64,000 nt of DNA from Bugula neritina. Lineage: Eukaryota; Animalia; Bryozoa. Positions 3,863-62,944 of this stretch are shown piece after piece; position 1 is the first letter of the stretch; every line of letters begins with the position of its first letter. Below the pieces are notes generated by a model that searched no databases, was not told where the DNA came from, and saw nothing but the letters and a program-made list of their open reading frames with translations. The stretch spans positions 4,744,741 through 4,808,740 of the forward strand of contig OZ037768.1 of the NCBI GenBank assembly GCA_964035545.1. The letters are read 5' to 3'. The position numbers and the translations under genes are program-made.

Positions 3863-6800
3863 TCATAAGCTGGTGTAGAATGTAGCTAATATACACACAG
3901 TAATGAAGTAGGTCCAGTGAGCTTGTAGACAACTTGAGTGATTAATCTGCTCTTTTCGAGGTTTCTTGCCGTTTACTGATACAGGCTTATCCGAATCTGC
4001 AACAGATTAGAGAAGACTAAATATCAATCATTTATAATAATCACAAGCCAGACTTGTATGGCAAGATCAACTTTACTATAGTATTGTACAGTATTGAATG
4101 TGAAGAAGTTGTCTTCTCAGTAGAACCAGCTAAAATGTTATATCTTATTCTAGTAGCAATAATATAAACCGGAGTTATGTGCCAAGGATGTGTTATTGAA
4201 GTGACAAGCCAACTCATGCCTTCTATTTCATTCATTGAGTATTGAGCATTGTCTAGTAGCGGCTATTCAACACAGCATAAGTTTATGCATGACTTGCATT
4301 ACTTTTACAATATGTAAGGGAGATGCTATATAACACTTACTTTATGTAACCTATTGCTAAGACCAAACATTCATTTACCTGAACTATTATGCACAAACTT
4401 CACACAAGCTCAAAGTAACAGTATTTTTGCTAACAACTAATAGAAAGCCACACTAAGAATTTAGTTCAACTACAGCACTAGCCACCATAAATAACATAGT
4501 TATAATAATTTATTAAACATGATCCTGTCACTCTTTGTAAAAAATGGTCGAAATAGATAAACCACAAAACGTGACCACTGGACTGGGAAATGAAACTTTA
4601 GGAATCTCTACACAACACTAGAACATCACTCTGGAGCATGATAATTGAATTATGTAGAAGCATGCATTTGCTAGGAGATATTTAATGGAACCGGAGGGCA
4701 CAAAACAATACAAATATGTAAACAATGATAAGCAGGCCAGCATATACAAACCTCCACTCCTTTATTGGAGTACAAGTGTGAGAGTTTATGTGGATATGAT
4801 ATGCTGTGAGGACTATAACCTCACTATGCCCACCTCCACAGCATAGTAACTCAATGCTCATTATAACATTGTAAAAGGCATTCAAGTTCACAATAAAAGG
4901 TATTATTTTTCCTGTGAGGTCATAGACTAAAGGAAAATATTATGTTAATAATACAGGAATGCAACTTGATTCATTAATTACTACATGTCAGTTACAGTGA
5001 CTGACTAGTGCAGTGTGTCACAGCAGTACGTCACAACAGTATGTCACTGCATTAGGTCACATAAGTATGTCACATAAGTATGTCACAGAAGTATGTCACA
5101 GAAGTATGTCACAGAAGTATGTCACAAGTAAGCTTCCTGTTTATTTACTTTTCTTCCTGCTTGCCGATACAATACGCAGATAATGAAAAAAAACTTGCTG
5201 AACTCCGAAATGAAAGTCAAGTAGAAGCCAGTGTTAGAAAGTACCTGCTAAGTCTAGCAGGTACTTTCTAACACTGTGTTGTGTTTTTGAAGATCAACCA
5301 ACTAGTCAAAGTGAATGCTAATCCAAGAAAAATAAACTGTAAACAAAATATGAAGCAATGCTGACACACACTACTGTGTCCCTCACAGACCACACAATGT
5401 AATACCTTGGACAGAGATGCAAGCTTCATTTTCTCCCAACGCGTTTTCATAGACACAACAAAAGGACCTTGAAAAGTCTGCTTCTTGGACAGGCTCTATA
5501 ACCAGAGTGGTGATTATTGAAGCAGCTGCATTGGTGGTGTTAGTATAACTGTACCTAGTCGTGTCATCATTTATTTCTTCAACTTCACCAGCCCTACAAG
5601 TTTATAAAAATACATTTTATTACACAAGGTAAAACACATTAAATACATTGAAAGATTGTTATTGGTTTTCTACAAGATTATTTAGCAGAGGTTCTTTCTT
5701 GTATTGTCTAGTTTGACAAATTTATGCAGTTTCCATTCAGCACTCATAAACTGCCGCAATAAGTTGCGCGTGAAGCTATGTGCTTGCACAGATGAGAATA
5801 GTGAGCAACAGCATCAGAATAATAAAATAATTAGTCAATTCTATTAATAGGGCTAGTGGAGAGAAACTATTTGCTAATTAATTAATTATTCTGCATATTA
5901 TTGAACCAAACTGTAAACTACTTTACAAGTGACTGACTACATAGTTATTCTAACCAAACCTTCTCAACAGATTTATTTATCGCTGAATATCAGATCAAAA
6001 ACATCAAACTTATTGAAAGAGGCGACTTCAATGAACAAAATAGTTAGAATAAAGTGATCACAAAACTAAAATTTATTGAGTCTTAAAAATTTAGATTAAA
6101 AAATAAACTAGTGTAAAAACCCTTAAAACTAAACCTATTAGAACTACAGAAAACAGCTATTTGAGAGTTAATATTGGATACAATACACACTTGAAAAACT
6201 CTCAATACATCAGTTAGTAGTATCAGTGAGTAGTATAGTGAGTAGTATCAGTGAGTAGTATAGTGAGTAGTATAGTGAGTAGTATAGTGAGTAGTACAGT
6301 GAGTAGTACAGTGAGTAGTATAGTGAGTAGTATAGTGAGTCGTATAGTGAGTAGTATAGTGAGTAGTATAGTGAGTAGTACAGTGAGTAGTATAGTGAGT
6401 AGTATAGTGAGTAGTACAGTGAGTATTATAGTGAGTAGTATAGTGAGTAGTATAGTGAGTAGTATAGTGAGTAGTATAGTAAGTAGTACAGTGAGTAGTA
6501 TAGTAAGTAGTATCTGTTAGTAATAGCAAGACAGGGAGTAACAGTATCTTACTCGGAGTGTTTCAGAGGTCTGTAGTACCATCTAACGTTTAGTAGAACA
6601 GGTAGGGAAGGAGGTGCAACACAACGCAACTCGGTGTGATATCCCACCATCTGATTAACTATGAGGGTGTGAACTGTAACCACTGGTTTATCTGAAGTAA
6701 TATTACAGTGAAATCATGGAACACATGCTGAGTAAATTACACACACTAATTACAGTAGCTCACACAGCAATAATATACATATAATATCCACTGAGTAATA

Positions 6801-9678
6801 TACAGTATATTATCTACAGTGAGAAAGTGATGCAGCATGTAGTCCTGTACAGTTGATAGCATGTGAGGAGTATACATTAGTTTATGCTAAGAATAAATGT
6901 TTACATATACACAGTTTAACAAATATACATATATCATACATGTATGCATGATGTGGTTTAATTATCTAGGAATAAGTTTAGGACAGTAAATTGTTGATGA
7001 CTCATTGTTATGGTGAAGTGATAAAGCCTTTCACTGCAATTGACCTCAAAGTGAAATATATGCATACTGCAGCACGTATTCATTGAGTCACTGATTCACA
7101 TCAAGTGGTAGTTTGATAACACTACTGGAAACTCATTGTAAGCATAACAATACAAGAGCAAATATAACTACAGTTAGGAACTAGAGTTAGGAACTACAGT
7201 GAGTAACTACAGTTAGGAACTACAGTTAGGAACTAGAGTTAGGAACTGCAGTGTAGGAAGTGTAGGTGTATCAACGTACGTAATACTGTGACTGTCGCTG
7301 TCCTTGACACAGGGGAAGTCACTCTATTCCAAGCTGAACATTGGTAAGTCGCAGAATCTGTAGATGTTATATTCTTTAGAACTAAATTACCATCTGGGCT
7401 CTACAAAACCCCTTCCAACATAAATGTCAAAAAACAAGGCGGAATGAAGTGCTAGACCACATGTGATGTACTAATAAACTCATCACAACCAACACGTTGA
7501 TGTAAATGAAAACCAGGTAAACAGATTTACTCTGTGAATGAGGCCTCCGCCCAGTGACGCTGCCAGAGCTCTGTCATCAGTTCTGCTCCACTCCACGGTG
7601 GGTCTGGGAAGACCGATGGTGGGGCAGGAGAGAATTATTGTATCCCCTTCCTCCACTGTCTCGTCTTCCAATACTGCGGTGATTTCTACTGGACCTGCAG
7701 AGAAATAATTTCTTTAAATATGGCAGCGAAACAAAACAATATTATTTACAAATGCTGTAGCTTAAAATATCAAGTAAAAAGTTAAACTATCAGTGGTTAA
7801 ATACAAGTTGCAGTATAACTTTAAAAAAAAAGAAGTGAAGTTAAATCAACTGGAAGAATGTTTAAGTTTTTGTGTATTTATGATAAGTGTTGTGTACAAT
7901 ACAGGATATGAATTTGCAACTTCAGTTAAATGTGACTCAATAATTTTGAAAACCAATCATACCCAGTAAACTGTTAATACAAAAAATCAACTCTAAGACT
8001 TTAAAAACAAACTTTTTGTATACCAAATACAAATGAAAAATCGAAACTATATTACTGTATACTAGCTCTGATTGGAGAAAATCCTGATTATTAAATTTTC
8101 TTGTTGTTACTTTCAGTGGCTAACACAAAACTATTGGTAATAACTGAAAATAGTAGATACTCATGAATATTAAAATTAAGATGAAAGTGCACGAAAATGG
8201 GAATTTATCTATTACTTTACTTTGAATACAATACAAATACTGATGTTTAAAATACTACATGTACATGCATGTGAGAAGTGTTACACCTTTGACATATGCA
8301 TAATAAGAAGCAGATACCTAGTACTGCTTTGAAAAAGTGTCACTAATGGACTTTAGTTTACATGATTATCACACACTATTAATTGTTGCAAAGGATAAGA
8401 ACTAGGAACATAAATAGGTTAAAGTATAATCACTGGCAATTGTCACAGTCATATACCAACCCAAACCTACAATATCAGATTTTAGCAAATAGGTTTTTAG
8501 TATAATTATACTTCTGCAGCCCCTAAATAATTTGATCTCAATAGTAACCACCAACTGCATTTACTGCAACTCTTATAACAAATAGCTAATGGTTTGTCAT
8601 ACTGAACCAGGAAAAAATTATTTCTCTACAGTACGCTACAATTTCGAATTAGACTTTTAAAATAAGAATCAAACAAATGGAAACGAAACTCCAAGGACAT
8701 TCATAGTCTGTATTTGGACAACTGTACTACAAAATTGCATTAGCTGCATATGTTTCAAATGAATTAAAACTACTGCAGTGCCTATACTGTTATGGAGAAT
8801 GGCTAATTCAGTTACTTAGCACATGATCAGTATAACTGCTTTTTGAGGAAGTTGAAGTTAATTGGCTAAAATTGCTTTTGAGCACCAGGAATAGTATTTA
8901 ACTATTATTATATAATTATATTAACTGTTATATACTTCTGCACTGAGTTAATCTGTTAACATGGTTGCCAGGAGAAATGGCAGCTGATAGGCTTGAGCTG
9001 ACAGATCTCAAAAAGAGTCAGTAAAATTCCTTCCAGTGTGCAGTTATCAGTTGCAAGTTACCTGCTAGTAGAATTTAGAGTTACTAGTAGCTACTTACTC
9101 ACAAAAGATATTTCAATGCTCCGATTGATATACGAATGTATGAGGGTCTTATTAACGTCGAGATTTACAGTCAGCACTTCACATTTAAACCATATTTTCG
9201 GACTATCTGAGTTGCTGTAATAAGAAGATTGTAGTTGATCCACTATGAGACTCACACTACCATTCTCAGGGCTATATTGAGAAATTTCTTCAGGAATAGC
9301 TTGAAAGCCCGGCTCTGTTTTATCTTTGTTAAAAATGTATGAAGGTGATGTAGGCGACCCAGAACTCCATTTCACCTACAAAGGAACAAAAGTGACAAAT
9401 TTTTAAAAAATAGCTAATGTTATAAACAAAGCAAAGGTATCAAACTTATTGCAAGTAAAGAAATATACTCACCTCTGCATAGTCATATGTAAAATCAGCA
9501 TTTACATAAAAACAAGTTATGTTAAAAGGTGTTGTAGGAGAGATGTCATACGTGTTGCTTTCAGCATTAAAAGTAGCTGTAGTAGTAATATTAGCCATAT
9601 CATAATAAACATTCTTCCATGCTGTCACTCCCAGAACTAACAGCTGATTGAGGAGAAAACTGATCAAACAGCTCCGCA
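3863..9678 (-). CDS. IgA: 3-Ig-domain (V-like, I/C2, Cys-rich Ig) surface protein with signal peptide and GPI-like tail, about 409 aa; first exon uncertain
   Basis: Exons 9473-9678, 9099-9375, 7531-7694, 7280-7400, 6553-6691, 5406-5593, 3863-3996, all phase-compatible and open. Ig motifs: LSC...P.P.VEW and LVLKNITSTDSATYQCSAWN. Tail ...HWTYFITVCILATFYTSL*. The start is either a split A|TG (A at 10162) or ATG-TTG-TAC-G at 10849-10840. Confidence 0.85.
5035..5127. repeat. 13-bp minisatellite (GAAGTATGTCACA)n
   Basis: About 6-7 units, degenerate at the 5' side; lies in an IgA intron. Confidence 0.85.
6224..6512. repeat. 12-bp minisatellite (AGTGAGTAGTAY)n
   Basis: More than 20 near-identical units in an IgA intron; explains the spurious ORFs 6248-6529 and 6251-6520. 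Confidence 0.95.
7167..7250. repeat. 13-bp minisatellite (AACTACAGTTAGG)n
   Basis: About 6 units in an IgA intron. Confidence 0.85.
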
Positions 9679-11725
9679 CTGCAAAATAACCATCTCCTAA
9701 GAAAATTTCATTACAATATAGCAATAAACTATGTGTATAACTTGCAAAATATCATTTCTAGTACACCAAACTGTACATACAAACATACAAGTGTTTTATT
9801 ATGAGCCAGAAGTGCAGTTTTAGGTGGAAAACAAGTTGGTAGCCAGTCACCTCAAGTAAGAAGGCCTGTCAGCTAAACAACTGATACCACTATTCTGAAT
9901 GGTAAAACATCATTACTTATTTTTTTAGGAGCTACGTTCTTATAAAGTAAAGCCATCAGACAACATTGCTCTGAATACTTACATGAAAACCGTTTATTTC
10001 TCTGAAACAAGTACATAGCTACAGCATTAGTTGAGCCCTTGGAGTCTTTCACATCCTTGAGTCTGACTACAAAATATATCAAAGTTTTGCTATAGCATAA
10101 TTAACACTATGCTTAACTTTTCATTATATAAACTACATAAAGTATTATGTAAATTACTTACTCTAATTTTCTAATCTCCCTCGTAATTTCAACTACTATT
10201 GATATTTATACTGAGATCAGTATTGTCAGAATTAATAAAAACTTAATGAAAAAAGCTATTGTATGCCTTGAGACAGATGATAAAGATACTTATACTTATA
10301 TTGATAAGGCCCTAAATATTATAACGGTTATTATAATCACATTATTTATCAATTTTGCTGCGACACTTACCAGCAATTTAATGAGTGACTGTGATACCCA
10401 CTATCACCATGAGTATGAAGTATATAATAATCTTAACTCTAAACAATCAGCAAATGATTTATGATTGTAATAATATTGATTTTACTACTACTTAGTGCTC
10501 AAAGTTAAAGTGTTCATGGGGTATGCAGTGCCCTTGCCAGTCTTTCTTGGAACCCTTCAACTTAACATTACCCCCACAGTTTTTCCAACTCTTTAATTTT
10601 TCTAAGACTAATACCATTTATGAGACAGCTTAATAACTGAGCTGGCTTGAAAGGTCAAAGTTTCAAATTTCAAGCCAGTTCAGTTACTAAATTTAAACTG
10701 CGACTGAGTCAGTGTCACATATTAATAGTATTAGTATTACTATAACTATAAAATTTACTTTTAGTGGTACTATTACTATTAGTATTATATTTAGTTTCAA
10801 CAATACATTTACGGATACTATGAGTATGTCTATACTTACCGTACAACATAAACATTAAGCTTAACTTATAAAAACGAAATTAGATATAAATAATTATAAT
10901 ATTACAACTTAATCTTATAATTATTATAAGTTATAACTTAAACTTATAAGTCTAACTCTAAGATTAAGTATTTACTATTCAACTATAAAATTAAGTATAA
11001 TAATCACTATAACAGTATAAGACTAAGTTACACTAAATCTAATAGTAATAGTAATATAAATATTAAATTTAATAGTAATACTAATACTAATAGTAATAGT
11101 AATACTAATACTAATAGTAATACTAATAGTAATACTAAGTCTAATAGTAATACTAACACTATTAGTGTATTAGAATTAGTAAATGCAATACTCATAGTCA
11201 TACTGTAAGACTACGTGTATTACTATTAGTATTAGTATATCTTAAACTCTATCAATATAAATATGAATATTCAGAATCATAATGATATTGAATATCAAAA
11301 TGAAAACGCCTTTTGAAAATGTATAACTTGAGTAAACTTCTTGATCTAGGCCTAGGCTTATAGTAGATGACTGATGAGTGATGAGGATAAATATAAATGT
11401 TACCACAACTAACGTCAAATGTTATTTATTCTAGTATAAAAGTATAGGTATAAAACAAAGTAATATTTTGGTATTGAAAAAAATAGTAGATAATAATAAT
11501 CCAAATACTGAAATAGCCCTCATGATGACGATGATGAAGCTAGTGGCAGTGTTGTAGCATCTACAATTACTTTACTAATAGCGGATCGTCAAACGCAGCA
11601 CAAATTCTGGAGTCACCGAGTGCAGCATTTATAGAAGCTCGATTGCCCATATGCCAAACTCGAGACTCCTGCACTAAAACTTGGTGCTGCATCAGGCAAA
11701 TTCTCTCACGCTAACTAGCTCTCAG

Positions 11726-12991: not shown

Positions 12992-13006
12992 GTCGCAAGC
13001 CTAAGG

Positions 13007-14215: not shown

Positions 14216-17200
14216 CTATTGCAGCAAAGAGAAAAACAAAATATAGGCTGATAAAGTTAAATTTACAGTGAATAGTCCTGATGTCTTTTGAGCTAAAAAC
14301 CAAAACAAGGTAAGGAATTATCAACAGTTACAAAATATAGTATATGAAAATAACAAGTCGATGCAGCTAACAACTAACATAGCCTTACTAGCAGCTATGC
14401 TAATTTCACTAAAACTGGCTTTCTCCCAAAACATTTGGCCTACATTTATAATTTTAGTATTTTATTGCACAGTTAACTTTGAGGAGCAAAATTGTATGTA
14501 AAAATAACTTGAAAGGTTACAAACACAAACCAAATTATTAGTGGCAGCAATAGAGTCCAAGTACAGTTTCAAAATTCGAGCTGCACTGCAAACACTTTAC
14601 AGGAATAGTCTCAAAATCAACCAGATCTTTAAAGATCACAACATTAGCAAAAAGTGAAGAGAGATAAATGAACACCTCTTAATAAGAGATTGTCAATTTT
14701 TCAGCATTTAATGAACAACTTACTTGCAGTAGAAATGGAAACTAAAATCTCTAGACTGTGATTGGTGTGTGTTTCCAGATAGTTCCCATCAGGCTCACGG
14801 ACAACAGTTATGACTGAACACCGATATGTTATTTTAGTTGAAGAGTGAAAGTACTTGTATAATGGAAGCACCGAATCCACGCGTAAGGTTATAACTCCAT
14901 TTGACAGATCTTCTGTGATTGGTATTTGATTTGGAAGAGCTTTCACACCTGGAAAGGTTTGTCCATCAAAGTAGAGCAAGAACAGATGGTTTTGTAAAGC
15001 AGCAGTCCACTGCACCTACAACAATGAAAAAGAATATTAATAACATATTGTTGCCAATGAAGAAAACTTAACTACAAGGTTTTAGGTAGCAGCTTTATAT
15101 AAGCCCAAGTCATAAAATCTGAAGTATCTTGAAGTGAAACATTAGTTATTTATTTGTTTGTTAATTCACATTCATTTCCTAATGTTTATAATAAAATGGG
15201 GATAAAACATCATTCTGAAAATCAGGAGTAGGTTGCTACTGCTGAGGCTTTCTATTTCAAAGCTGTTCTTATTGCCAATGTTTGAAATCAGTTTGTGCAT
15301 GAGTGCGTGTAATTGAATAAGTTGAGGGAAAAATGTAGCTATATTAGTTTATTATAAAGAAATTATAACTGAAACAAAAATAAAACTGAAAATAAAATAA
15401 AATGATATAGGCACAACCTTAGCATATGTCAAAGAAGTATCCAGGTTTTTATAGGAACAAGTGACACTGAAGGGGGAGTCTACACTTATCTCATACGTCT
15501 GAGATTTTAGATCAAATGGGACTGTTGCTTTGATATCAGTCATAAAACGATGCACAATTTTCCACTCTCTCTGGAAATAAAAGTGATATATCGTGAGATA
15601 ATGATTAGAGTGAACATTCATTTGACATCCAATATTCAGTTATTGCCATTGGAACAGTGCTTCTCGTTGAGTCATCAATATATATGTTGGCTCTAGGAAT
15701 GCACAAAACCAATCATAACTGGGTGGCATTTTTGACATCATTGGGTATTTTTGTCCCATTGGGTGCTAACCTTTAAATTAGGATCTAGACTAAAGCTCTA
15801 ACCAGTTGACTGTGGCAGCTTCATGCAATTTCTCAGAATGGCTATTGAAATTATCATTCTATTTGAAATTTTATTTTTTTAAAAGTGATCAGGTTTTAAA
15901 TTCTTAATTGAAGTCTTCTAAAAGAAACTAGGTAGGTTTATTTCAAGAAAGAATTTCCGATAAGTATCGAGGTTCATCTTACTAACTTTAACCTTGTTTC
16001 CTTTTCATGCTTTGTAAATGTAACTTTGTAAATCTGTTTAATAGAGTTGTTGAGTTACCCGATTTAATAATTTTTAACTTTACGTTACAACTTTTTTACG
16101 TAGCTGAAACACTTTGGACAGAGCAATTTCTGAAAAAACTAGAAACATGAATACAATTTATATACCTATCTAGTATGCATGTTAACCAACCACCTTTGAA
16201 ACAGTAAAACAATGAAAACAGAAAACTTAATTTTCAAAGAACAATTGTATATTAAAACATCTGATTTAAGTATAAAATTAACTGACTAATGCGAATAAGA
16301 ACATTCAACGATATACCGCAGCGGTTGTCCCTGACAATACAAAACACATATTTTATCAAATAACTTCAATTTACACACAGCCATACAAAACATGCAGTTC
16401 CTACAACATAATTCAGAACCATATGATGACACACGCAGATTATATTAAAAAAAGCAATGTTAATATTTTTACTAGATTACAATTTACTGGAATATTGTGA
16501 TAGATTCTCATCCTCTACTGTTCTCAAGTAACTGCGTGTGTCAGTATATTTTGAATGCTGTTGGGCTAGCTTTCTAATGCCCTATTATTGTGATTGTTGT
16601 TAAAGCTTTCAGTATAATGTAATTTTTAATGAAATACGCATTTCCAGAGTTATTTTCCCTTTTTGCTATTTTATCGTTTTGCATTAATACTGATACTGGA
16701 AATTTGTGTAGCTTTTATGAATGCCTTCAATAGGTTGTTATTATAGCTAAATTCTTGGCCTATTGAATGATTCATTCTCCTTTGTCTATTTTTCTTTTGT
16801 TACTGTCAAGCTTAACTTTCTTTTGTCTGTTGGAACATTCTAGATGTGAATTCTTGTGTATAAAAGCAGGCGAGTTTCCAGTGTAGATTCAGACTACTAC
16901 TGGAGCTCGCTGGTAGTAGGGCCCTAAGCTGTATCTGATACAATAAAGGTTATCCTCATTTGTACTCAAATACTTGGCTTATTCTTTCTAGAGCATGTAG
17001 GCACTAGTTGCATTCAGAACCCACAGTTTACTACAATATCATTGTACGAGCATTAAATCTTCAAATTTCCCAGCAATATAGAACCGATCCATTGAAATAT
17101 GTGTTTTTAGCAAGTTTATAGCTAACTATAATTTTTATTACTATTATTTTTAATGCTATTATTCTTTAAGCCAAAACCTAAACTATAGATATACTCTCAT

Positions 17201-28600: not shown

Positions 28601-30072
28601 GATGCTTTTGTTTCAAAATATTTATGAGATTTATATTTATAGACTAGTGCAAGATTTTCAACACGACATATTTTTCAAGAAGGTGTCAAATGTTTTATAA
28701 CTAGTCTGGTGGGACCTCACACATGATATGGTTTGTGGCTAAAGTAAACTTTAGACGCAACAAGTCTTGATCTTATCTAAGTTTTCATTACTATATTATC
28801 CTAATTTATCTATTTTACTATATAATTTTGTTAACTTGATAAAGATGAAAATTCATATTTTATGTATAAAAGAAATACTTTTAGGTAAAACAAGATATGC
28901 CTGATGCCACAGTGTATAAGAAAGTGTTAATTTGAGCTGTCTCAGGCCTCTCAACAGTATGCATGCAGATAGTGTAGTTAATACTGATGTTTCTTTCAGC
29001 CATAAACTTAAATTTGTCATGTTAATCTCAACATGTCAGTTTTGTTTCAGGACATGATGTCTCAAATCATGGACAGTTGTTTGTCAACAAATGAGAATTT
29101 GGCTACTGCCTCACTTCAATGTTTGACTAATCTCACCCTTACAGTCAACCTCAGCAGTCATGCAAGTATTGTTGAAAACCTGCCACGTCTGCTTGGCACC
29201 TTGGATGTGTATCAAAGTAGACGACTTCAAATTTGTAAAGTGCTGGTCAATCTTTCTGCCTGCAATGCTATGGTTCCTTGTATCTTGGCAGCAAAGGTAA
29301 GTTCTCAACTCATTGGTCTGTAAATTACTATGAAGTACAAATTGCTAAGGAATATAAATTGATCAGCAATTCTAACGTTTAAATACTATGCAAGTGTAGG
29401 TTTAGATTGCATAGGGATAGGGAGAGTCTGTAATTACTTCATCAAATATTAAACAGGTAAAAGTATTAAATTTATTGTAATATATTGTAATATGAAATTG
29501 CTGCTATCAGCCGACTACAATTAAGGCTATAAAATTTATTCAAATTTAGTTGAATTTAATAATTGAATTATTGTTTACAACTGAACTGCACCAGTAACAA
29601 CTACAATTTTTAAGTCAATGTGTAGGTAGATGGATACATTTTCACTATAAGACTAAGCAGTTGTAAAATGCAAGAGTCTATCAGATTTTAGAGTATGGAT
29701 GCAGGTTATTCATTATAACATGTCAGAACAAAATTAGATTAGCAAATGTCATTCTGATGCACTGTGATGTAGATTCCATGGTGTGCAAGAAACCTTTTGG
29801 TTGAAGATAAGGATATAGCTAGACGATGGCTACGATTTATGGTCAATATCACCCAAGCCGCACTAGATGATCATGTAACTGAAAAATCATTACCTGTGAA
29901 ATACAAGGCAGCTAGTCCTGAAACAACTTATTGCTATTTATATGGATCCAGTAATCAAGTACTTTTAGATAGTCTTTTATCACACAACTATGAAGATGAT
30001 GAATTAAACCAGCTATCTAATACTTTATATAAAAATATCAAAATGAAAAAAATACTAACTGCTATGTCGTAG
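25660..30072 (+). CDS. ARMC10: Armadillo-repeat protein with N-terminal hydrophobic anchor, ARMC10/ARMCX-like, about 392 aa
   Basis: Exons 25660-25897, 27161-27411, 27728-27871, 29051-29296, 29773-30072 (1179 nt, open). N-terminal hydrophobic segment LLIISAVAISTYYIV followed by basic residues. ARM-like helices AMNAVNNL, ASLQCLTNLTL, QICKVLVNLS. The ARM call is well supported; the ortholog symbol is less certain. Confidence 0.7.
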
Positions 30073-30676
30073 CACCCAATGCTATCCATTTACTTGTAGA
30101 AATCTGAATATAGAATAACATAAATGTTTATAAATCAGTGGAAATATTTGCATTAATTTTATGTTGTAATTATTCAATAAAAAATAGAAGCTATAAATAT
30201 TATAATATATTTATAATTATTTATAATATATTTATCTTTTGACTTTGAAATTAGAACCAGGTGTAGAGACACCAGTGACAAACTAATCTATCACAGCGTT
30301 CTGTTAGGAAGGGCATTCCGTCATAATTCTTTGTTTGCCACAATAGTAAAAAATCGTCGGCCTGCAAGTTTATATTATATTTATATTTCTAAATAATATA
30401 TACACAGATAAAGTCATATATGATTATATTTCAATTTTCATGATACAAGGTCTATACAGAATTTGAAAACAAACATAGTTATTCAATTTTTGAGCTGCTT
30501 TGGGAAAAGGCAATTCAATTGAAATGATCACGATTTTTAACAATTTCAATAGTAACATGATGAATACTAAACTAAAATAACACCAAATTCATCAGAGAGA
30601 GTTGAATAGAAATACTGGACAACAATTAATTTACAATACAAAGAGCCAACTCAGCAGTAAACGAGGTATTATTAAC

Positions 30677-36559: not shown

Positions 36560-36604
<45 letters not shown>

Positions 36605-38296
36605 TTTTAAATCATACTGGATAATAGATATTTTACTTACCCACAATGGATATTTCAATACTATGGCTGATATGCGACTGTATAAGGTTGTCATCAATGT
36701 CGCGATTAACAGTCAGCACTTCACATTTAAACAATTTTTTTGAACTATCTGAGTTGCTATAATAAGAAGATGGTAGTTGATCCACTATGAGACTCACACT
36801 ACCCTCCTCAGGGCTATTTTGAGGAATTTCTTCAGGAATAGCTTGAAAGCCCGGCTCTGTTTGACCATTGTTAAAAATATACGAATATGATGTGGGTGAA
36901 CCAGAACTCCATTTTACCTACAGAAGAATAAAACTAACAAATTATATAAAAGAGCTATTAATGTTATAAACAAAGCAAAGGTATCAAACTTATTGCAAGT
37001 AAAGAAATATACTTACCTCTGCATATTCATATGTGAAATCAGCATTTACGTAAAAACAAGTTATGTTAAAAGGTGTTGTAGGAGAGAGGTCATATGTGTT
37101 GCTTTCAGCATTAAAAGTAGCTGTAGTAGTAATATCAGCCATATCATAATAAACATTCTCTAATGCTGTCACCCCCAGAACTAACAGCTGATTGATCAAA
37201 AAGCCCAACAGCCAGACCTCCACTGCAACATAACAAGAATAATCACAAAACACATATCGGTAAGCATTGCAGGATAAGAAAAATATTACTCTTGTTGTAT
37301 GGGGGGGGGGGGGGGAGAGGGGTTTAACTTAGTAGTAGTTGTCTTCTCTTGCTTTTGCATCAACATAGATATAGTGTGGGTGTGACCTATGAGTAGCAGA
37401 TATAAAACAGAGTGTGTATGAGAAGATTGAGAAGATTGAGTGATTGAAGACTGTGGACAGAAGAGAATAGATGCGTTTGAATACAATCGAATATGTTAGG
37501 ATGTATTAGTCGAGTGCTAGCCCAGGATCCTAGACAGCGGAGCACCACCAGACGAATACACTAACCTGCAGTCCTAATTTTACCTTCTACAGACTAACAA
37601 GAGCTGGAGTTACCTCGCAACCCAAGTCAAGCAATCCGTACCAATATACCGACCCACAAGCTAACCCCAAGGTCACAACAAATATATTATTCGATGAGTA
37701 TGCAACAACGCTAAACTGTGAAAATCCTTTATAACACTCTTAACAGAATAATTTTAATATAAACATACTGCATTCATAAATGGTAAATAAAAATGTTGGT
37801 GGCTTCTTAGCAAATGATATGTTGATGTGGAGAGTTTGGTTTTATTATAAGTATAACCTCTTTAATAAAATTTTCAATGTAAAATGATCACAAGTTATGT
37901 GGCATTATATCTATTGTATCATTATGATTGTAAGGCTACATATTTGATATTGTACTTTTGAACTTTGCAACACGATTTGAATTTTAATTTATAGTAAACA
38001 ATGCTGAAATTCATAAAAAATAGGGATGAAAATGCAGTTGCTTAGTATCAAGTATAAGTCTATAACTATTAACTATAATATTAATAATAAATTAACTTTA
38101 GAATTCAACTAGTTAACAATAATTTTTAATAATGCAAATACTAATAGTAATACTAATACTAACAGTAGTTATACTGATACTAATAGTAATAGTAAAACTA
38201 AAAGTAAATGTAATAGTAATAGTTTCACTACTTACTGCGTCTACTGAGTTTGATTCAGCGATTGAATGTAACAGAACAATACTACACGAACTCACT
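30677..38296 (-). CDS. IgC: 5-Ig-domain (V-I-Ig-Ig-V) surface protein with signal peptide and GPI-like tail, about 647 aa
   Basis: A of the start codon at 38296, then exons 37017-37222, 36641-36917, 36175-36320, 35673-35790, 35265-35394, 34959-35143, 34455-34578, 33088-33272, 32732-32745 (14 nt), 32009-32161, 31178-31475, 30677-30783. Total 1944 nt, open. Tail ...QASLIFFLASLASFI*. Confidence 0.87.
36564..36603. repeat. (TA)n microsatellite
   Basis: Seen directly. Confidence 0.9.
37293..37680. mobile_element. Solo-LTR-like insertion in IgC intron 1
   Basis: Bounded by TGTTGT...ACAACA, with an internal TATAAAA and a G-run. Absent at the homologous IgD site (ATTACTCTT-AATA at ~49106). No clear TSD. 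Confidence 0.5.
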
Positions 38297-38419
38297 ACTA
38301 TAGAGCCTCTTTACACCATATAGAATATGCAACTCTAAAACTAATCGTCAGCTTATCCTTAAAATCAGTATTGTGATTATCATATTAGTTTTCGACTTCG
38401 ACTAGACCTAATAGATGTA

Positions 38420-38470
38420 CAAACAACGCACAGCAGACGACATGCTAAGACGCGTGCGCGCTTGCTTTTG
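38420..38470 (-). promoter_or_regulatory. Conserved promoter-proximal CpG motif upstream of IgC exon 1
   Basis: CAGCAGACG...CGCGTGCGCGCTTGCTTTT, homologous to 25497-25534 and 49723-49762. Confidence 0.45.
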
Positions 38471-39869: not shown

Positions 39870-42800
39870 TCAAATAAAACTAGCTAATGAGGCTAGGAAG
39901 AAAATTAAAGATGCTTGGACTTTCAATAAGCTTGTTATATTTTGCTTCACAATGAATTGTTCGGCTGGCTCTTGTGCTAAAATAACAAAGCAAGGTAGTA
40001 AATCGTCAAGAGTTTTAAAATACAATAAAAGGATTATGTACTGACTTCAGATCAATGCTAATAAACAATAAACTTAGCTGGTGCTTGCAACTAAAGTATC
40101 AATTCCCCCTTCCCCAAGCTGCTAATCATTCACAATTTTAATCTTTTGTTGCGAAGGTAATTTTATGGAGTAAATGTGCAAAGTTCCTAAACACAAACTC
40201 TTTTGTCAAAAGTTACACTATTAATGTCTAAGTGCAGTTTCAAAACCCTAGCTACAGTATAAACTATAAACACACTGGTCGGCTGTAAAGAATTCTCATT
40301 CAAATATGTCTGTGGATGCTATCAACATTTGCATTTTTTAGGAGACTTTTAGCATCTAATAAAAACTTACTAGGTCTAGTAGTAGACATAGTAACAGAAA
40401 TGAACATCTCTAGACTGTGATTGGTGTGTGTTTCGAAGTAGTTCCCATCAGGTTTAACAGCAACAGTTATGACTGAACACCGATATGTTATCTTAGCTGA
40501 AGAGTGAAAGTACTTGTATAACGGAAGCACCGAATCCACGTGTAACGTTATAACTCCATTTGACAGATCTTCAGTGAATGGTATTTGTTTTGGAAGAGCT
40601 TTCATACCTGGAAAAGTTTCTCCATCAAAGTAGAGCAAGAACAAATGGTTCTGTGAGACAGCAGTCCACTGCACCTACAACAATGAAAGATAATATTAAT
40701 ACCAGTGTAGAAAACACACACCCCGAGTGCACACACGATATAAAAGCACCTCAACCAGCTCTAGTTATATATTGAACATATTATGTATAGTGTTTTATTA
40801 TTTTCTCAGTTTGTTTGCAGCATTTGCTTGTAATACTGACTGGGACTTTTAAACTTTTGAGAAACTTATCTAGCATTATTTATAACAAAAGTCTACAACT
40901 ACAGCTTATTGGAGACATTCTCACTATAAAATAAACCTCACTTTCACAAGGCTCACCACTTTAAATATGTAAGTGAGGTTGACTTAGCTAATATCTTTTC
41001 CCGTGCTTTGCTTAAAAATGCAATGTTTGTCAGAAAGAATTTTGGTAATGTTTTTAACCTGTATGACTTATCATTTGCCCCCTGAATGTTACAACTTCTT
41101 GCAGTTTAAAATTTTAAATTCAATTAAAAACTAATAGCAAGTCAACTTGCTGCTTTATGTATAGTCAAATTATAAAACAGGATAAATAAATAATAAAATA
41201 ATATAATAAAAGAAAATGATTATCTTGGAATGAAATAAAATAAGACATGAAGATGATGGGACAAACCTTAGCATGTGTGAGAGAAGTATTCACATTTTTA
41301 TAGGAACAAGTGACATTGAAGGAGGAGTCTGCTTGTATTTCGTATGTCTGAGATTGTTGATTAAATGGGACTGTTGCTTTGATGTCAGCCATATCACGGT
41401 ACACAGTTGTCCAGTCTCTCTGAAATAAAAGAGAATGGAGTGCAAAGGAGTGTAGAGATCATAAAACTCGTTAAGAAATCTAAAGCAAAATATGTTAAAG
41501 GTTGTTAATGAGAACAATCTATTTGACGTGCATGCATCCAGTTAAATTTAAATTGTCACAATTGAAGACGGTGCCTTATAATTACATTATATATGTTTTG
41601 TTTTGTAAAAGGTCTTTCCAGAAGTATTGAGGACCATATCTCATTAACTTTAATTTTATATGAGCCTACTCTGTTCAATAATTTTATTTAATTATCAAAT
41701 TTAAAACAATTCTTTATTTTATGGTCCAACTTTTCGAGTAATTAAATAACTTGAGGCTGCTTAATGTGAGCCAAAGCATGAAAAAAATGAAAACTTCTAA
41801 GTCAGAAAAATACATACAATAAATATGACTACTTAGTATGCAAATTAACCACCTATAGAACAGTGAAACAATAAAAAAAATATTGGCTAAAAAATCTGAT
41901 CCCATCAACTATTAACTGGCTAATGGAAACTAGAACATTCAACACCTTACCATGGAGTATGTTTCTAAATTAACCACACAAAATAAATATAAAATACTTG
42001 AAAATTCTTTAGCACTTAGAGACTATCAGGAAAAGAACAAAATGAAATCGAACTTAGAAATGTATGAGTAAAATCATTACATCATTGCTTTTCATAACAG
42101 CATCAACTTGCTTTCAAAGGTAAACATATAAGAGATATTGTGTTTTCCCCCACACTCAATGAATTGTTACGAACAGAACATGTTACACAAATTTTTTCAT
42201 AACATTTCTGAGCATCTCTCTGAAATCTTAACAGAGTTTGAATAGTATCCCCCTTGAGCTACCTCCAAAAAAGGAAAATATTCTTAATTTGACAAGTGAC
42301 CCATTCTAAGGTGACCCAGTTTAACGGTCTGATGATGATTGCAGATGAACTACATGAGGATTTTATTAAGACAGTAAATAATTCTGCCATGAAATGTTTA
42401 CTTATTGGCGAGTTTCATAGGTTCAACAAGCAAAATTTATCCCTGCATAGCTGAGAAAGCACTAAGAATTTTTGTTTTATTTAGCACCATCAATTTCTAT
42501 ACTAGGTGGGATTCTCATTTGAAAATAAAAAGAGAAACTGCTTTGACCTGCAAAGTGACCAGAGGTTTGCCCTGTCCGAAACAAAGCCAGCTATCACATT
42601 ATTACTGAATAAACTGCTCTGTTTTTTTACATGCATAATAATACTGTAGCCATTACATTATAATCAAACCAAATAGAAAAAATATAGACTTGCATCATAA
42701 TAATTATTATGTTATATGACGGTCAGTTTAAAGTGCATATAAATTATAATTGTCAAAAGAGAGGATATTAATCACAAAGGTTGATGAAAGGGAGGAATGG

Positions 42801-45800
42801 CATGGAAATGGTTGGAAACCACTGCGTTAAAAACCAGCTGTAAGTATTTTGCCAGGAGCAACAGGTCTCGGCCCTGGCTACTTGAAAATAAATAAACACC
42901 GATATATTAACCCAATTATGTTTCTGTATATAAAACTAACCATTGATTACTATTGCTATTATTAGTATTATTCTTGGTTGAACTTTTGAACTGAGCTAGG
43001 CTCCTATTTTCTACCTAGTTCCACTAAGCTGGAACGGATAGGACTTTTTCAAGATATTAGTTAATTCCAGCAAGACTTTTGATGACCTTATTTGTACTAT
43101 ATTATTATTAATATTAGTAGCATTATTATTATTGATTGTGTAATTTGCTATAATGCCCTAGTTCTATCAATAATACAAGCTCGCTCACGCAAGTTTATAA
43201 CCACCATCCATGTGAGAAAGGGAGAGGTTTTTGTTAAATCAGGACTTGTTCACATGGGGTACAGGAGCAATTATGTCTGTAGGCCTATGCTCTTCCTAAC
43301 ATCACCGATAGCCTTTACTGGGGTTCGAACCAATGATTTTGTGTTTACTAAGCAAACTCTAAAGTCTAAACCCTAAACCACGACTGCTCCCTCTAGCAGA
43401 CAATAATAGATAGCAACATTTTACTTAGCTGAGGGTCCCACAACTCCCACTAGAATCAGTCAGCATCTTGAAAAAGTACTATCATTATAAATGAATTAAA
43501 CTTTTTATGTACATGTATGTTGATTGACCCTGCCTATACCATTCGTGAATATTACACAATCAACTTACTCCTAAGCATAATATTAATACTTCATACATTA
43601 TACTTACTTTTTAAAATGGCACACTTTTCAAAGTCTCCCAATATATTAGTGTAGACACAACAAAAGGACCTTGCAAAGTCTGCTTCATGAAGAGGCTTTA
43701 TAACCAGAGTGGTGATTGAAGCAGCAGCATCTATTGTGTTAGTATAACTGTACCTGCTTGTGGTATCATTAATTTCCTTAATTTCACCATCCCTACAAGT
43801 TTATCAACACTCTAATTGCATAAGTAGAAATAGAGCTACTAGAAACATTTAATTAGACTCAATGATATTAAAAAAATTATTTATTCAACAAAATATGGTT
43901 AGCAATTTCATAGGCCTAGAAAATGCACTTTCATTTATAATATAACTAGCTATGCACGATTTGTAATTTATCAATTGTATTTATTGTATTTATTTGTATT
44001 TATTGTTTTGTCAATGTCTCTACTAACAACAGCTGTAACACAAATTGTGGAACCATAGCATACAGAGGCCTCGCTCATAGCTCTGTTAACCAAAAATGAT
44101 ACGTCTCTGCTAGCAGTAGCAGTGATGCAAATTAGTGAAACCTAATCCGGGGCAGTATATTAAATAATTTTGTTTTTTTCTTCATTACGTTTGTCAACTA
44201 CCACAACATTAGGCATCTGTTTTGACAACTTTGTCTATGCATCTCATAAATTTTTTATGTAATTATCACGTTTCATTATTAGGTTGGTATGAGAACTACA
44301 GTTCTTGCTTCTTTGAAATCTGTAAATTCCACAAAGTTCATACTAAATTATTGAAGCCACCTCTCTTCTGACACTCAATCTGCCAGAGCTTTTCACATTT
44401 ACTGGGTATTACAGTATCAACCCTCGCATTTGACAGATACGTACCAGAATTTGGAGTACCAACTAATATCTGCCACAGATGGAACAGACTTGGCTGATGT
44501 ACAAGATAATTCAGCAAGGCCTGCTTTAATTTGATCAGATGATTGAGCATTGATAACTGGGGATATACCTGTAACAATAGTATATTCCCAAAGTTGAAAA
44601 TGCACCAATCAGTTGGACAGTCTTGCTTACAAAATTCAGAATGTACCTCAAGTACCAATTGTATAAACTTTAATGTTACATTGATGTTTACAGTTGAAAA
44701 CTCTATCAACAAGTTATTTTGTACAAAAGTCATGTTTTTGCCATTTAGGTGCAGTAACAGAGAAATTTCTATAGTCTAAACTCTTTAATTGCCCTAATAA
44801 ATTATGGTTTGGAGTGTATGTTGAAAAACTTTAGAGAACAAATTCTTTAATTACAATATTATTTTCTCATCTAGAGCACATACTTTACCATTTTTATCAG
44901 GTACTATACATAATTTTATTATTACTGTGAGCCAGAAAGAGCCCTGGCCATGATTGTATTTATAAAATTTTAAAATTTGGAATAATCTAAATTTACAATT
45001 TATAATATTTTATGCAATGAGATGCACCGATTTAAAGTTCAAAAACAAATCTACATTTAACTCAAAATTTGTTTTTTTAGATATTATGTAGGTTGTCGAT
45101 TTTAATGTCAACGAAAATACTGGAACCTCAAATATACTTTAAAATCAACTTACATTTTACCGAAAATGATAGAACAGAGTAGTTTTCTACAATAGTCTTG
45201 TATGCATGTCACAATGACTAGTGTAAGTGTTAGTATAATGGTTAACATACTGATTTGCAAGTTATAGAAGCCCGAGGATCAACTCTCGTTGGGGGCAGAA
45301 CTTTTTACATTCAAACATTAACCATTAATAATGCAACAGATTATCCTCAGAAAAATAGCTAATTTAATCTCAAATTTTTAAAAAAAAGTATAAGTAGTGT
45401 TCAGCAAATTTTCACCTCCAAGAATAGAGTATCAAGAGTTTTAGTTGCAGATTTGATGAATCACTCTGGCAAGTAGAATTAAAAGCGTAGACATTAATCA
45501 AAGTTTTGTATACCTAAATGTGAAGATTTTTGTTAGGAGTGTAAGGGGTTAGTTGTCCACTACAGCCATTATAGCATAACTTTCAAAATAAATATTATAG
45601 TAGATGCAGGTTAACCTGGTTACCTTGTACTTGAGCACACTTCTCATTGTCTCCTACATTATTGCTATAAACACAGCAATATGACCTCATGAAGTCTACA
45701 GCTTCAACAGGATCTATTACTAAAGTGGATACTACAGGTCCAGATCGGTCATTGAAAATGGCTATGGTGGTTACATGGTATCTGCTTATTGAGTCATCCA

Positions 45801-48800
45801 CTGCAGAGATTCTAAATAGAGCGCCAAATACAATAATTTATGGTAAACAAATTCTTTCAACTAATTTTAAATTCATTTGTACAACATTTTAATTCTAATG
45901 TATCCTGTGCTGCAGTTATGAAAATTATTTTCTCACTCTGTACTATTCACTGGTTTATAGAGCCATGAAACGTCAGTAACTGGAGACTCAAGCTGTGAGG
46001 AAGAACATCTGTAATTTAACTTATCTCCAATTTTTACTTCTGCTGTTATTGATACTTCTGGCTTAACTGTCAAAAATGCCACCAAATAAAATTATTTAAC
46101 ATTAGTTCAACACTTTTTAAAAGGAAACATATTATTTCTTCACCAAAAGTATTAAAATTCAATAAATTAATTTTAACAAGAGATGGTTAATTTTTTGGAC
46201 ATAAAAGTTAACGAAGCTATGTTAAAAAAGAATAATCATGAGTTTAAACATTTCGTAATGCTGACAATGCTAATAAATTAAAGTAAAAAATTCAAATTAG
46301 TTGAAGTCAATACATTGAATAGTGTTTTGAACGACGTACTTAATACTCGCACAGTGAAGGTCTTGAATATAGGAGAAGTCACTCTATTCGTGGCAGAGCA
46401 AATATAAGCACCAGCCTCTGCTACAGTTACACTTTTCAGTTCTAACTTTTCACCTGCAAGCTGCGTTTAAAATAAAAAATTATATCAACAAAAAATTATA
46501 AAGTTATGCATTGCTATAACTGCATTATACTACTTGAAACAAAACTGTCTTTATATTTTAGTTACATCTACATCTCTATTATGTAATACATAGAGTTGAA
46601 TATAATGTATTAAAAACTGGAATATAGAATATAAGCATTTTGGGAACAATTGCGATCAAATAACCATGAAAATTCAACATGTTTTATTTTCTTTTAGTTT
46701 CTATACCAGTTTCTATACAACTTCTTTGACAATAAAGCATGAAATGTTAGATTAAAAATCTGCATTAAACGTACATATTATATAAAAGCACTTGTATGAA
46801 ATATCAAACATATATTTTGTAATAATGGAAGTTTACATTTGCAGACAGTGGCAAAGCGAGTCCATCTTCTCTAACCCACTCGAACCTTGGTGCAGGATGC
46901 CCAGTTACTTTACAAGTCAGTTCCGCATCACTTCCTTCATTCACTGTTAAGTCAGTTTCACCATCCACAAATTGCAGAGGCACTTTAAAGGAAAAGTACA
47001 TTCACAAAGTTCTATGTATTATTGTAAAAACTCAAAATAGCATATAATAAAAATTTACTTTCAGTTGGTATAGCTCTCTTTTCTGTTCCTACTATTTAGA
47101 CCAGCAAGCCCCAACGTCAATAAATAAATTATAGATTCTGTACACTATCTTTAAATGAATGTATAATAATGAGTGAAAAATAGCTATCATTTATAGAATA
47201 GTTTAATAAGTAATACAAAATATTTTATAAATATAGCATTATATTATATTAAAAAACTTTTGAGATAGCCCAGATATTGGGCATCATTTGTAAAAAAAAC
47301 AATATTGTATATAACCAAAGCTATAGACAGCAAAAATGTATGAGGATTATTTTTGAAAATCTACGAACTTCTTTGCGAAGTCAAGCAGCACTGTAGGTAT
47401 TTTGAGATGCACCGTCTTTAAACTTAACCCAGCATCTTTGACTCTCTGATTTATCAGCAGAAAATATTGGATATATTTTAAAAGAGCTTGCCTAAGCTAG
47501 TTGTGAAACTGAGAAAACAGATTCAATAATTGATTGAGCATATGTAATAGCAAATTGCAAATATTTATTTGTAATTGAGGCATCATTGTTTGAAATCATT
47601 TGAAACATTATTATAAATAACCATCATAAGATGTCTACAGTTGGAAAATATTGAAAAGTTGAATTATAAATAAGGAACTCAAATTGTACAATACAATATT
47701 ACTATGATAATTAAAATTTGGCTGAGGTTTTTCTGTTCAGCAAATTAAATGGAGTGGAAGGCAACTTCTTTTCCCAGTAGCTGCTAGTAAAGAGAGTTAA
47801 TTTCAGTTGATATGTTTTTATAGTATATCTATAGAAAGGGATGACTACAGTATCAAGTGCATCTACAAAACACTACCTCTCTTCAAAAGAAAACAACCTA
47901 CTCATACATAAGTCAGGCTGAATCTTTTTCGATCAGGTTGAGTCGAGCCTGGCTTACCTGTTTTATAACATAATATAATTTATATGCACACAAAGTTTAT
48001 CCAAAAACATATAAAACATATAATCAACGTGGTTGATATAACATAATGTCACTAATATTGTGCTAACAGCCACACATGGCCTTATTTCCGTTCCCAAATC
48101 ATGAAATTATTATTATTTAGTGTTGGATATAGGTATTATTTGCAAACTACTAGAATCAAAGTTAAATATGAGAGACTTCAAATCACATCTTACCTGTTCT
48201 AAATTAAACCCTTACATGCATGTATGCCATAAATTCAGAAAATACCACAGTTGTAAAATTGTGCTAAATGATATTTCACAGTTGCTAAAGCTCAATAAAT
48301 CGTGTCACAGTATATACTTGAATTCATATAACTGTAGGTCAAACTCCATACAGGGGTTTTCAAAAGTACCCAAATTTGAAACAAAGATGTCATGAAATAA
48401 ATATGTGAATGAGTAGCATAAAACGTTTTAAATGATATTGGATAATAATTAATACTTCACTTACCCACAATAGATATTTCAATGCTATCGTGTATACGTG
48501 TATGTATCATGTTGTTATCAATGCCTTCATGAACAGTGAACACTTCACATTGGAACCATACTTTTTGACTATCTGAGTTGCTATAATAAGAAGATGGTAA
48601 TTGGTCCACTATGAGACTCACACTACCATCATCGGGGCTATTTTGAGGAATGTTTTCAGGAATAGCTTTAAAAGCCGGCTCTGTTTGACCATTGTAATAA
48701 ATGTACGAAGATGATGCTGGTGAACCAGAACTCCATCTCACCTACAAAAGAATAAAACTGACAAATATAAAAGAACTAATGTTGAACAAAGCAAAGGTAT

Positions 48801-49576
48801 CAAATTTAATGGGAAATTTGCAAATAAACATTTACTGACCTCTCCATATGTATATGTAAAATCAGCATTTACATAGAAACACGTAATATTAAAAGGGGTT
48901 TCAGGAAAGATGTCATATGTGTTGCTTTCAGCATTAAAAGCAGCTGTAGTAGTAATATTAGCCATATCATAATCAACATTCTCGAATGCTGTCACTCCCA
49001 GAACTAACAGCTGATTGATAAGAAAGCCAAACAGCCAGACCTCCACTGTAACATAAGAAGGATAGTTACAACATACTTGTAAGTAAGCATGGCAGGACAA
49101 GAATAATTACTCTTAATAAATTAACATAATAATTGTAATACTAATATACATAGAAATGTTGGAGCCTCTTAAGCAATGAGTATGACATGTGGGGAATTTT
49201 GTTTTATTTAATCCCTTTAATAAAGTTATCAATTTAAAACGACCACAATCTATATTATATATACCATTGCATTTACTATGGTTTATGCCATTAAAAGGCC
49301 ACATCAAATTTTTAAACTTCATCTTACATTTTCCAATACAATTTATACTTATAGCTGAGATATACATTAAATTTAATTTTAAAGAAGAATCGAAACAGGT
49401 AGTTTCTTAGTGTTAAACAAAGGTCTACAATATTATTATTAATATTAATAATAAATTGATTTTAGAATTTAACTAGTAGTAGTTGAAAATTGACAATAAC
49501 TGCTAACAATAATAGTAATACTAATAGTAATACTAATAGTAATTAATTTGAAAGAGCAATTTCACACGAACTCACT
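39870..49576 (-). CDS. IgD: 5-Ig-domain (V-I-Ig-Ig-V) surface protein with signal peptide and GPI-like tail, about 651 aa
   Basis: A of the start codon at 49576, then exons 48840-49045, 48465-48741, 46837-46982, 46340-46460, 45937-46066, 45624-45811, 44445-44568, 43608-43792, 41951-41964 (14 nt), 41267-41419, 40371-40674, 39870-39976. Total 1956 nt, open. I-set motifs: ELTCKVTGHPAPRFEW and EAGAYICSATN. Confidence 0.87.
42050..42824 (+). mobile_element. Decayed hAT-Charlie transposon 3' fragment in an IgD intron
   Basis: Translation YPCIAEKALRIFVLFST resembles the hAT C-terminal dimerisation region of Charlie-type transposases. Ends in GTTGGAAACCACTG, a Charlie-like TIR. Confidence 0.6.
43180..43390 (-). 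mobile_element. tRNA-derived SINE-like element
   Basis: B-box-like GGTTCGAACC and a core GGTGATGTTAGGAAGAGCAT shared, in opposite orientation, with 51955-52146. Confidence 0.6.
45228..45305 (+). mobile_element. Degenerate tRNA-like SINE head
   Basis: A-box-like TAGTATAATGG and degenerate B-box GGATCAACTC. A related reverse fragment lies at ~18780-18805. No clean cloverleaf. Confidence 0.4.

Positions 49577-50769: not shown

Positions 50770-62944
<12,175 letters not shown>

Follow-up and report, generated by a model that had tools for sequence, protein, structure and literature searches.

Four tandem immunoglobulin genes in Bugula neritina

We analyzed a stretch of 64,000 nucleotides ("the window") on a chromosome-scale contig of the bryozoan Bugula neritina (genome tzBugNeri2.1; PMC11480708). 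The window contains four co-oriented paralogs from the immunoglobulin (Ig) superfamily, all on the minus strand, which we call A, B, C, and D. On the plus strand, the order is the end of an adhesion G-protein-coupled receptor (GPCR) gene, A, B, an armadillo-repeat gene, C, D, and glutaminyl-tRNA synthetase. When the window was compared to itself, the minus strand proved to carry seven V-type modules, four I-set modules, and seven of C type. A first-pass annotation, made from the sequence, had proposed four co-oriented paralogs with matching exon phases and with three or five domains. Our models agree: in all four genes, the splice sites are AG/GT, the phases match, and the frames are open, and the domain order is V-I-I in A and V-I-I-I-V in B, C, and D. 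Every domain is split over two exons. The spliced models were joined to check frame, hydropathy, and the ratio of nonsynonymous to synonymous divergence (dN/dS), while database searches were run exon by exon or with database proteins. The genes and their key exons are:

3863-11204, minus strand: gene A, 400 amino acids, three Ig domains (signal, V, I, C-type I domain, hydrophobic end). Exons 11204 (the A of a split start codon, inferred), 9678-9473, 9375-9099, 7694-7531, 7400-7280, 6691-6580, 5593-5406, 3996-3863.
14216-25322, minus strand: gene B, 637 amino acids, five Ig domains (V1-I-C1-C2-V2-hydrophobic end). Exons 25322, 24402-24200, 24108-23829, 23253-23108, 22635-22515, 22194-22065, 21535-21351, 19954-19831, 19145-18958, 16330-16317, 15570-15418, 15015-14724, 14292-14216.
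30677-38296, minus strand: gene C, 647 amino acids, five Ig domains, layout as in B. Exons 38296, 37222-37017, 36917-36641, 36320-36175, 35790-35673, 35394-35265, 35143-34959, 34578-34455, 33272-33088, 32745-32732, 32161-32009, 31475-31178, 30783-30677.
39870-49576, minus strand: gene D, 651 amino acids, five Ig domains, layout as in B. Exons 49576, 49045-48840, 48741-48465, 46982-46837, 46460-46340, 46066-45937, 45811-45624, 44568-44445, 43792-43608, 41964-41951, 41419-41267, 40674-40371, 39976-39870.
16330-16317 (B), 32745-32732 (C), and 41964-41951 (D), minus strand: predicted 14-nt microexon joining C2 to V2, with AG..GT at corresponding places in the alignment of the three genes.
48465-48741 (D), 36917-36641 (C), 24108-23829 (B), and 9375-9099 (A), minus strand: second of the two exons for the distal V domain, covering strands C to G; the most divergent exon, which bears the variable GFCC'C'' face.

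In all four genes, the predicted start codon is split (A|TG) over intron 1 (49576, 38296, 25322, and 11204), and the donor sites are conserved in a sibling lineage, which is described below. The microexon turns phase 1 into phase 0, and without it the frames of B, C, and D break between C2 and V2. In the sibling lineage, the microexon of B has 11 nt, which preserves the frame. We considered the possibility that V2 is a separate gene and rejected it, because the microexon restores the frame and because, in B, it does not end in ATG.

Protein ends and expression

In all four models, hydrophobic stretches are found only at the two ends. The N-termini resemble signal peptides (KD19 of 1.6-2.1). 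The C-terminal stretch has a KD19 of 1.9 in C and D, 1.8 in B, and 1.2 in A, and no residues follow it, so these proteins lack a cytoplasmic tail, as the first-pass annotation had supposed. The last 20 residues include 0-1 charged residues. Judging by sequence, small-residue omega sites are plausible in A and B and weak in C and D. Because hydropathy peaks only at the ends, with nothing beyond the last stretch, a glycosylphosphatidylinositol (GPI) anchor is plausible for A-D.

At least some of these genes are expressed. In RNA contigs of sequencing run X7, which was made from a symbiont metagenome sample, spliced joints mark six of D's predicted GT-AG introns (between 48840 and 44568), and spliced A-type V exons are present too. 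The spliced joints of D were absent from three other runs; only X7 shows them.

The D gene of the sibling lineage has lost 14 nt where its V2 exon ends (L004 near 18330 and L009 near 2140, corresponding to 40400-40385 in the window), which leads to a stop before the hydrophobic tail. This deletion is seen in two assemblies, and the truncated D is probably a secreted form.

The V domain has a predicted V-set fold

The V domain has about 137 amino acids, and its cysteines are 78 residues apart. Neither the V exons nor P0002 had any match in Pfam, and the V domain had no sequence match in the PDB at E = 10. The D-x-G-x-Y-x-C motif is absent ahead of the second cysteine in the V copies. Nevertheless, the Cys(B)-Trp(C)-Cys(F) pin is invariant in 7/7 copies, and the AlphaFold model of a homologous V2 domain (pLDDT, AlphaFold's confidence score, of 82.8) has a V-set Ig fold. 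VIA structural matches of this model included T-cell receptor V-delta (Z = 10.7; 105 residues with a root-mean-square deviation of 2.8), myelin P0 (Z = 10.5), and nectin-3 (Z = 9.7). The best Foldseek matches were VH/VHH domains, and Atlas gave TM scores of 0.64-0.68 to V-set proteins. The non-canonical V-like domains of the first-pass annotation are a further type of Ig domain that profile searches miss. We took the strand positions used below from the V2 model. (A single-sequence AlphaFold model of a three-domain piece had a pLDDT of just 34.)

The I domain is a standard I-set domain, and the third domain has a Cys-Cys motif plus an extra cysteine. With the I+C pair as query, the only single-stretch matches with E < 1e-8 were LRIG1, palladin, DIP-eta, DIP-alpha, DIP-theta, and neurotrimin. 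The match to DIP-eta spans the two domains in collinear order (residues 136-327 align to 109-299, which are DIP domains 2-3). The profile of the C-b exon matched KIRREL3 better than the DIPs. In the Atlas matches, Lachesin and Amalgam appear among Fas2, Dscam, and Kirrel. Every coding exon encodes Ig, signal, linker, or hydrophobic tail, and none matched a chitin-binding, fibrinogen, or Fn3 domain.

A sibling species and the distribution of the family

An independent assembly and two metagenome assemblies contain the same genes in identical order, at 84-89% identity. All four genes are retained one-to-one and in order in this sibling lineage. Gene A has an ortholog in L001. The ortholog of B is split by the NCBI annotation into KAF6031701.1 and KAF6031700.1, the ortholog of C is KAF6031703.1 (in L009), and D has orthologs in L004, L005, and L009. 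In the sibling C gene, there is a 5.3-kb insertion in the C2a-C2b intron (L009 15104-20423), and the middle domains are left out of the NCBI model KAF6031703.1.

The first-pass annotation had raised the concern that C and D might be uncollapsed haplotypes of one gene. We reject this because the sibling lineage holds all four genes in order, with C and D in tandem in the independent assembly; the two proteins differ by about 17%. We also considered whether the second gene set is a hyperdivergent haplotype. The sibling lineage differs from the window by 7-9% at the cluster, and by 7-10% at an unlinked gene on another chromosome. Because the unlinked gene is equally diverged, the second gene set represents a sibling species instead of a divergent haplotype. 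The genome with the window is from a Plymouth specimen, and it is 7-10% apart from samples from the US at two unlinked loci. At the cluster, it also differs from the NCBI assembly, which was assigned to Type S by genotyping (PMC7576161). The two public assemblies of B. neritina appear to be from different sibling species.

The closest proteins to A-D are hypothetical proteins from B. neritina (KAF6031700, KAF6031701, and KAF6031703). When we searched the window's own genome with profiles of the V and C exons, we found only the copies in the window; few candidates were scored, so distant kin may be missed. We also compared the profile of the V exon to 1.84 billion proteins. Apart from one Logan contig (L002, from run SRR25569768), full-length matches were confined to Bugula. 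This contig has an identical exon layout, and its V domain is 34-36% identical to those of the cluster, with gene A as the best match. Since this distant relative has that exon layout and matches A best, the ancestral form probably had three domains. Beyond Bugula, word-index searches gave only a weak match to hemicentin, and two metagenome scans found no relatives. Long repeat proteins (P0004-P0008, P0010, and P0011) were set aside as short matches to repeated stretches; of these, only P0004 and P0007 were inspected. Our literature searches found no paper on this family.

The same genome has a separate three-Ig gene (L026; G000:C2:27226500-27231200, minus strand), which looks lachesin-like. 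Its V domain resembles those of the cluster genes in having a phase-0 intron three codons ahead of the C-strand tryptophan; the third-domain intron differs. HHalign gave a probability of 1.5% for the V domain of the cluster against a lachesin-like V exon of this genome.

Overall, these results support a lineage-restricted, expressed, tailless family of the Ig superfamily that was hitherto undescribed and that is not a one-to-one ortholog of any named gene.

Mosaic genes and divergence of the binding face

The relationships among the paralogs vary along the genes, as the first-pass annotation had noticed. Genes A and C are 86-89% identical (nucleotides) in the V exons and 88% identical in the V intron, but just 43-45% identical in the Ia and C2a exons. 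In V2a, C groups with D, while in V2b, B groups with D. In the sibling lineage, a short patch is common to A and C but missing from their two copies in the window; another is common to B and D. Across quartets of sequences, 42 sites were lineage-shared and 16 were crossed, but these pairs lack independence. Reads from another sample were used to polish the NCBI assembly (PMC7576161), and this could blur the paralogs. The sibling A/C patch is visible in three runs of raw data for at least one gene. Together, these patterns point to the exchange of patches between paralogs by gene conversion, so that the proposal of a recombining, lineage-restricted family stands.

The first-pass annotation had also described one strongly divergent loop in the distal domain. 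This holds between paralogs: differences in V1 are highest in F, F-G, G, and C' (0.33-0.57), with the F-G loop at the top (0.57). Between the sibling species, it is C'-C'' that changes the most (0.24-0.33, as compared to 0.03-0.06 in the framework). The framework strands of V1 differ by 0.03-0.14. The amino acids of orthologs differ at 41/173 positions in C', C'', and FG, versus 24/364 elsewhere (p = 6e-8, with regions chosen after viewing the data). Similarly, the ratio of nonsynonymous to synonymous differences (pN/pS) is higher for the GFCC'C'' face than for the rest of the exon, both between species (0.63 versus 0.26) and between paralogs (0.86 versus 0.40). The highest values were 0.73 between species (C'-C'') and 0.92 between paralogs. 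Between species, the Ig proteins are 90% identical, with a dN/dS of 0.38 (confidence interval 0.32-0.46); the synthetase has a value of 0.05 and the armadillo gene one of 0.29. By these counting methods, we did not find positive selection: every region tested was at or below about 1. The F-G hairpin is strongly different between paralogs, yet it is mostly retained within each pair of orthologs, which suggests that the identities of the paralogs are maintained.

Our sample of alleles is two haplotypes of B plus a weak lead for D, which is far too small for a verdict on polymorphism. The two sibling-lineage haplotypes of B are 1.2-1.5% apart, as compared to 0.3-0.6% at an unlinked gene. They have 14 amino-acid changes in about 600 positions, just one of which lies in mature V1. 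In the 3' part of D, two assemblies are 0.24% apart. In run X1, from the window's lineage, the reference-type D V1 contig is at about half of the diploid depth among the contigs listed (depth being a weak measure), and it is accompanied by contigs with paralog-like residues. This weakly hints that X1 may contain a second D allele with three or more paralog-like residues. The first-pass annotation had taken low polymorphism under purifying selection as a sign against a recognition family. The overall dN/dS and the near-identity of the B V domains lean that way, and the hint of a D allele leans the other way.

Neighboring genes and other features

Other features of the locus are:

25660-30072, plus strand: armadillo-repeat gene (Arm_2; Pfam PF04826), head to head with B; splits the cluster.
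50560-50785, plus strand: decayed copy of the 3' end of the armadillo gene, matching 29998-30247; adjoins the end of the glutaminyl-tRNA synthetase gene.
21660-21975, minus strand: degenerate internal duplication in B, with a C1b exon copy that is broken (21975-21777) and part of a C1a exon (21712-21660).

Because the decayed armadillo 3' end adjoins the synthetase gene, we suggest that C and D arose by duplication of a block containing B and the armadillo gene. The degenerate duplication in B was found by self-comparison and has stop codons in its frames. The sibling lineage carries it too, and these exons are presumably skipped in splicing.

B and the armadillo gene are about 340 bases apart (25322-25660). 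Short GCGC-rich elements lie in this interval and also upstream of C (near 38460) and D (near 49755). The glutaminyl-tRNA synthetase gene, which served as a control for dN/dS, is at 50770-62911 on the minus strand. At the other side, a large gene for an adhesion GPCR (7tm_2) has its 3' end in window positions 1-2000 and L027 and converges on gene A. By position only, this receptor is a possible signaling neighbor. Just right of the window, there is a Bcl-2-like open frame (L028 964-1458 and beyond), as judged by eye from its translation. An intron of A contains a 12-bp tandem array with 25 copies (6212-6513), and intron 1 of A, C, and D contains TAATAG-type microsatellites.

What the proteins might do

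We propose that A-D form a small adhesion or cell-identity code, akin to the codes that Dpr, DIP, and IgLON proteins form. We put about even confidence in this proposal, the likeliest of those considered. The proteins would be bryozoan-restricted, tailless surface proteins, probably GPI-anchored, that work like the Wirin group (DIP, Dpr, Lachesin, Klingon, and IgLON; PMC6525511). Each would bind its own kind or a paralog on a neighboring cell via the GFCC'C'' face of its distal V domain. The identity of each paralog would be held mainly in the F-G hairpin, gene conversion would swap C'-C'' patches between copies and so retune specificity, and any signal would need a co-receptor. Gene A would retain the ancestral three-domain form; in B, C, and D, the C-type domain would have been duplicated and a second V domain appended via the microexon. 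V2 might either lengthen the protein or supply a second, cis-binding site.

Several observations weigh against this proposal. The V domain does not match domain 1 of any DIP or IgLON by sequence, the C-b exon profile is closer to KIRREL3 than to the DIPs, and the omega-site candidates of C and D are weak. For V1 alone, the quartet sites number 15 versus 7, which is not significant (p = 0.07), and the counts at quartet sites are not independent of one another. Immune or allorecognition receptors would be equally expected to vary on the GFCC'C'' face. Finally, the proposal is built from the genes: we infer the GPI anchor, the binding mode, the partners, the tissue, and any Wirin ancestry, and binding, localization, and tissue are predictions.

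These proteins could instead be receptors for innate immunity or symbiont recognition, with V domains that bind microbial surfaces (as for amphioxus VCBPs) on epithelia or in brood chambers, and with secreted variants that act as opsonins or decoys. We consider this possible but doubtful. It would account for the V-type distal domain with constraint relaxed on one face and for the probable secretion of D in the sibling lineage. B. neritina keeps a vertically transmitted symbiont, and the run that shows expression came from a symbiont metagenome sample. However, there are just four copies, which are stable between the sibling species, with neither chitin-binding or fibrinogen domains nor a signaling tail, and dN/dS is never above 1. 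Another possibility is species-specific recognition of gametes or larvae, in which divergence of the C'-C'' face between cryptic species would aid reproductive isolation. GPI-type Ig proteins take part in gamete binding in other animals, and the between-species changes are concentrated on C'-C''. But pN/pS is under 1, and the patches look as if they were imported from paralogs, so we view this explanation as the most remote of those discussed here. It is only marginally less far-fetched that A-D are largely redundant duplicates of one structural adhesion gene, with relaxed exposed loops and conversion but no specificity code. This would fit with the dN/dS values, which are all at or below about 1, with the overall value near that of the armadillo gene, and with the truncation of D in the sibling lineage. 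Against it, the F-G hairpin differs strongly between paralogs yet is mostly kept in each pair of orthologs.

The first-pass annotation had put forward a lineage-specific recognition or adhesion code, possibly for allorecognition. We favor the former part and not the latter. If the cluster belonged to a histocompatibility or kin-recognition system, then alleles would arise by C'-C'' conversion, allele-specific homophilic binding of V1 would decide between fusion and rejection (as for Alr1 and Alr2 of Hydractinia), and a separate, tailed receptor would signal. This is an animal that forms colonies, and reports of histocompatibility in a cheilostome and of kin-biased settlement in B. neritina are cited in PMC10078279. 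Also, there is a single locus, its distal domain is the most variable, the paralogs undergo conversion, the B haplotypes are more diverged than an unlinked gene, and the half-depth D V1 contig in X1 hints at a second allele (although depth is a weak measure). In contrast, the B haplotypes are one residue apart in mature V1, while alleles of Hydractinia Alr2BC are 60-84% identical in domain 1 (10.1101/2022.03.25.485889). There is no transmembrane helix or tail with tyrosine motifs, the 3' part of D barely differs between two assemblies, and the 7-9% gap between the lineages is genome-wide and not due to a divergent haplotype. We therefore judge allorecognition to be unlikely. A lineage-specific, Wirin-like code for adhesion or recognition is a better fit than an Alr-type locus because dN/dS is below 1, the copy number is stable, and the B haplotypes are nearly identical in V.

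Our searches of the literature did not find any molecular allorecognition system or cell-identity code described for bryozoans. If alleles of these genes track fusion, then allorecognition would be opened up in a further phylum. Because the family is small, at a single locus, and expressed, all 16 pairwise bindings and the allele spectrum would be cheap to test.

Comparison with known systems

Amphioxus and Ciona VCBPs and snail FREPs are invertebrate Ig proteins with variable V-like domains. The cluster proteins also have variable V-like domains, and B-D carry two each, but those are not adjacent; also, there is no chitin-binding or fibrinogen domain, and the C-terminus is of the membrane-anchor type. 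The Alr genes of Hydractinia are clustered Ig-superfamily genes from a colonial animal, with the most variation in the distal domain, exchange between paralogs, and V domains that are not seen by Pfam yet are V-set by structure (PMC9546547). All of these apply to the cluster as well. However, there are 41 Alr genes; they encode single-pass proteins with a cytoplasmic tail and an Fn3-like region, have one exon per domain and no Cys-Trp-Cys pin in the V domain, and have very many alleles (PMC9546547). The cluster has four genes, no tail, split domains, and the pin, and strong allelic divergence was not seen. As judged from sequence features, the cluster does not belong with the Alr, VCBP, or FREP families.

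Like nectins, Kirrels, and CEACAM-type proteins, the cluster proteins have an N-terminal V-set domain above I- or C-type domains, with fold matches to nectin-3 and myelin P0 and a match of C-b to KIRREL3. They lack a transmembrane segment and a PDZ-binding tail.

The first-pass annotation did not recognize the architecture as that of any system it named, but gene A has the layout of DIP, Lachesin, and IgLON proteins, and the I+C pair is most similar to DIP domains 2-3. Wirins have two or three Ig domains, a signal peptide, a hydrophobic end, and no tail; A fits with its V-I-I ectodomain, while B, C, and D, with five domains, do not. Wirins, nectins, and Kirrels bind via GFCC'C'', and DIPs and Dprs are mostly tailless (PMC6525511). 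Besides the collinear match to DIP-eta, other similarities to Wirins are the variation on the GFCC'C'' face and the lineage-specific expansion. The DIPs and neurotrimin dominate the single-stretch matches to domains 2-3, although LRIG1 also passes and C-b prefers KIRREL3. Unlike Wirins, the cluster proteins have a V domain of about 137 residues with wide cysteine spacing, no D-x-G-x-Y-x-C motif, and no sequence match to Wirin domain 1, and the third domain has an extra cysteine. B-D also have a second V domain near the membrane; such a V-I-I-I-V layout, with a membrane-proximal copy of the presumed binding domain, is unusual. Because V does not match domain 1 of DIPs or IgLONs and the profile of C-b is closer to KIRREL3, we do not regard Wirin ancestry as established, and gene A seems best described as having a Wirin layout and a Wirin-like stalk. 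Even if the cluster is only an adhesion code, it would be a bryozoan parallel to Dpr/DIP.

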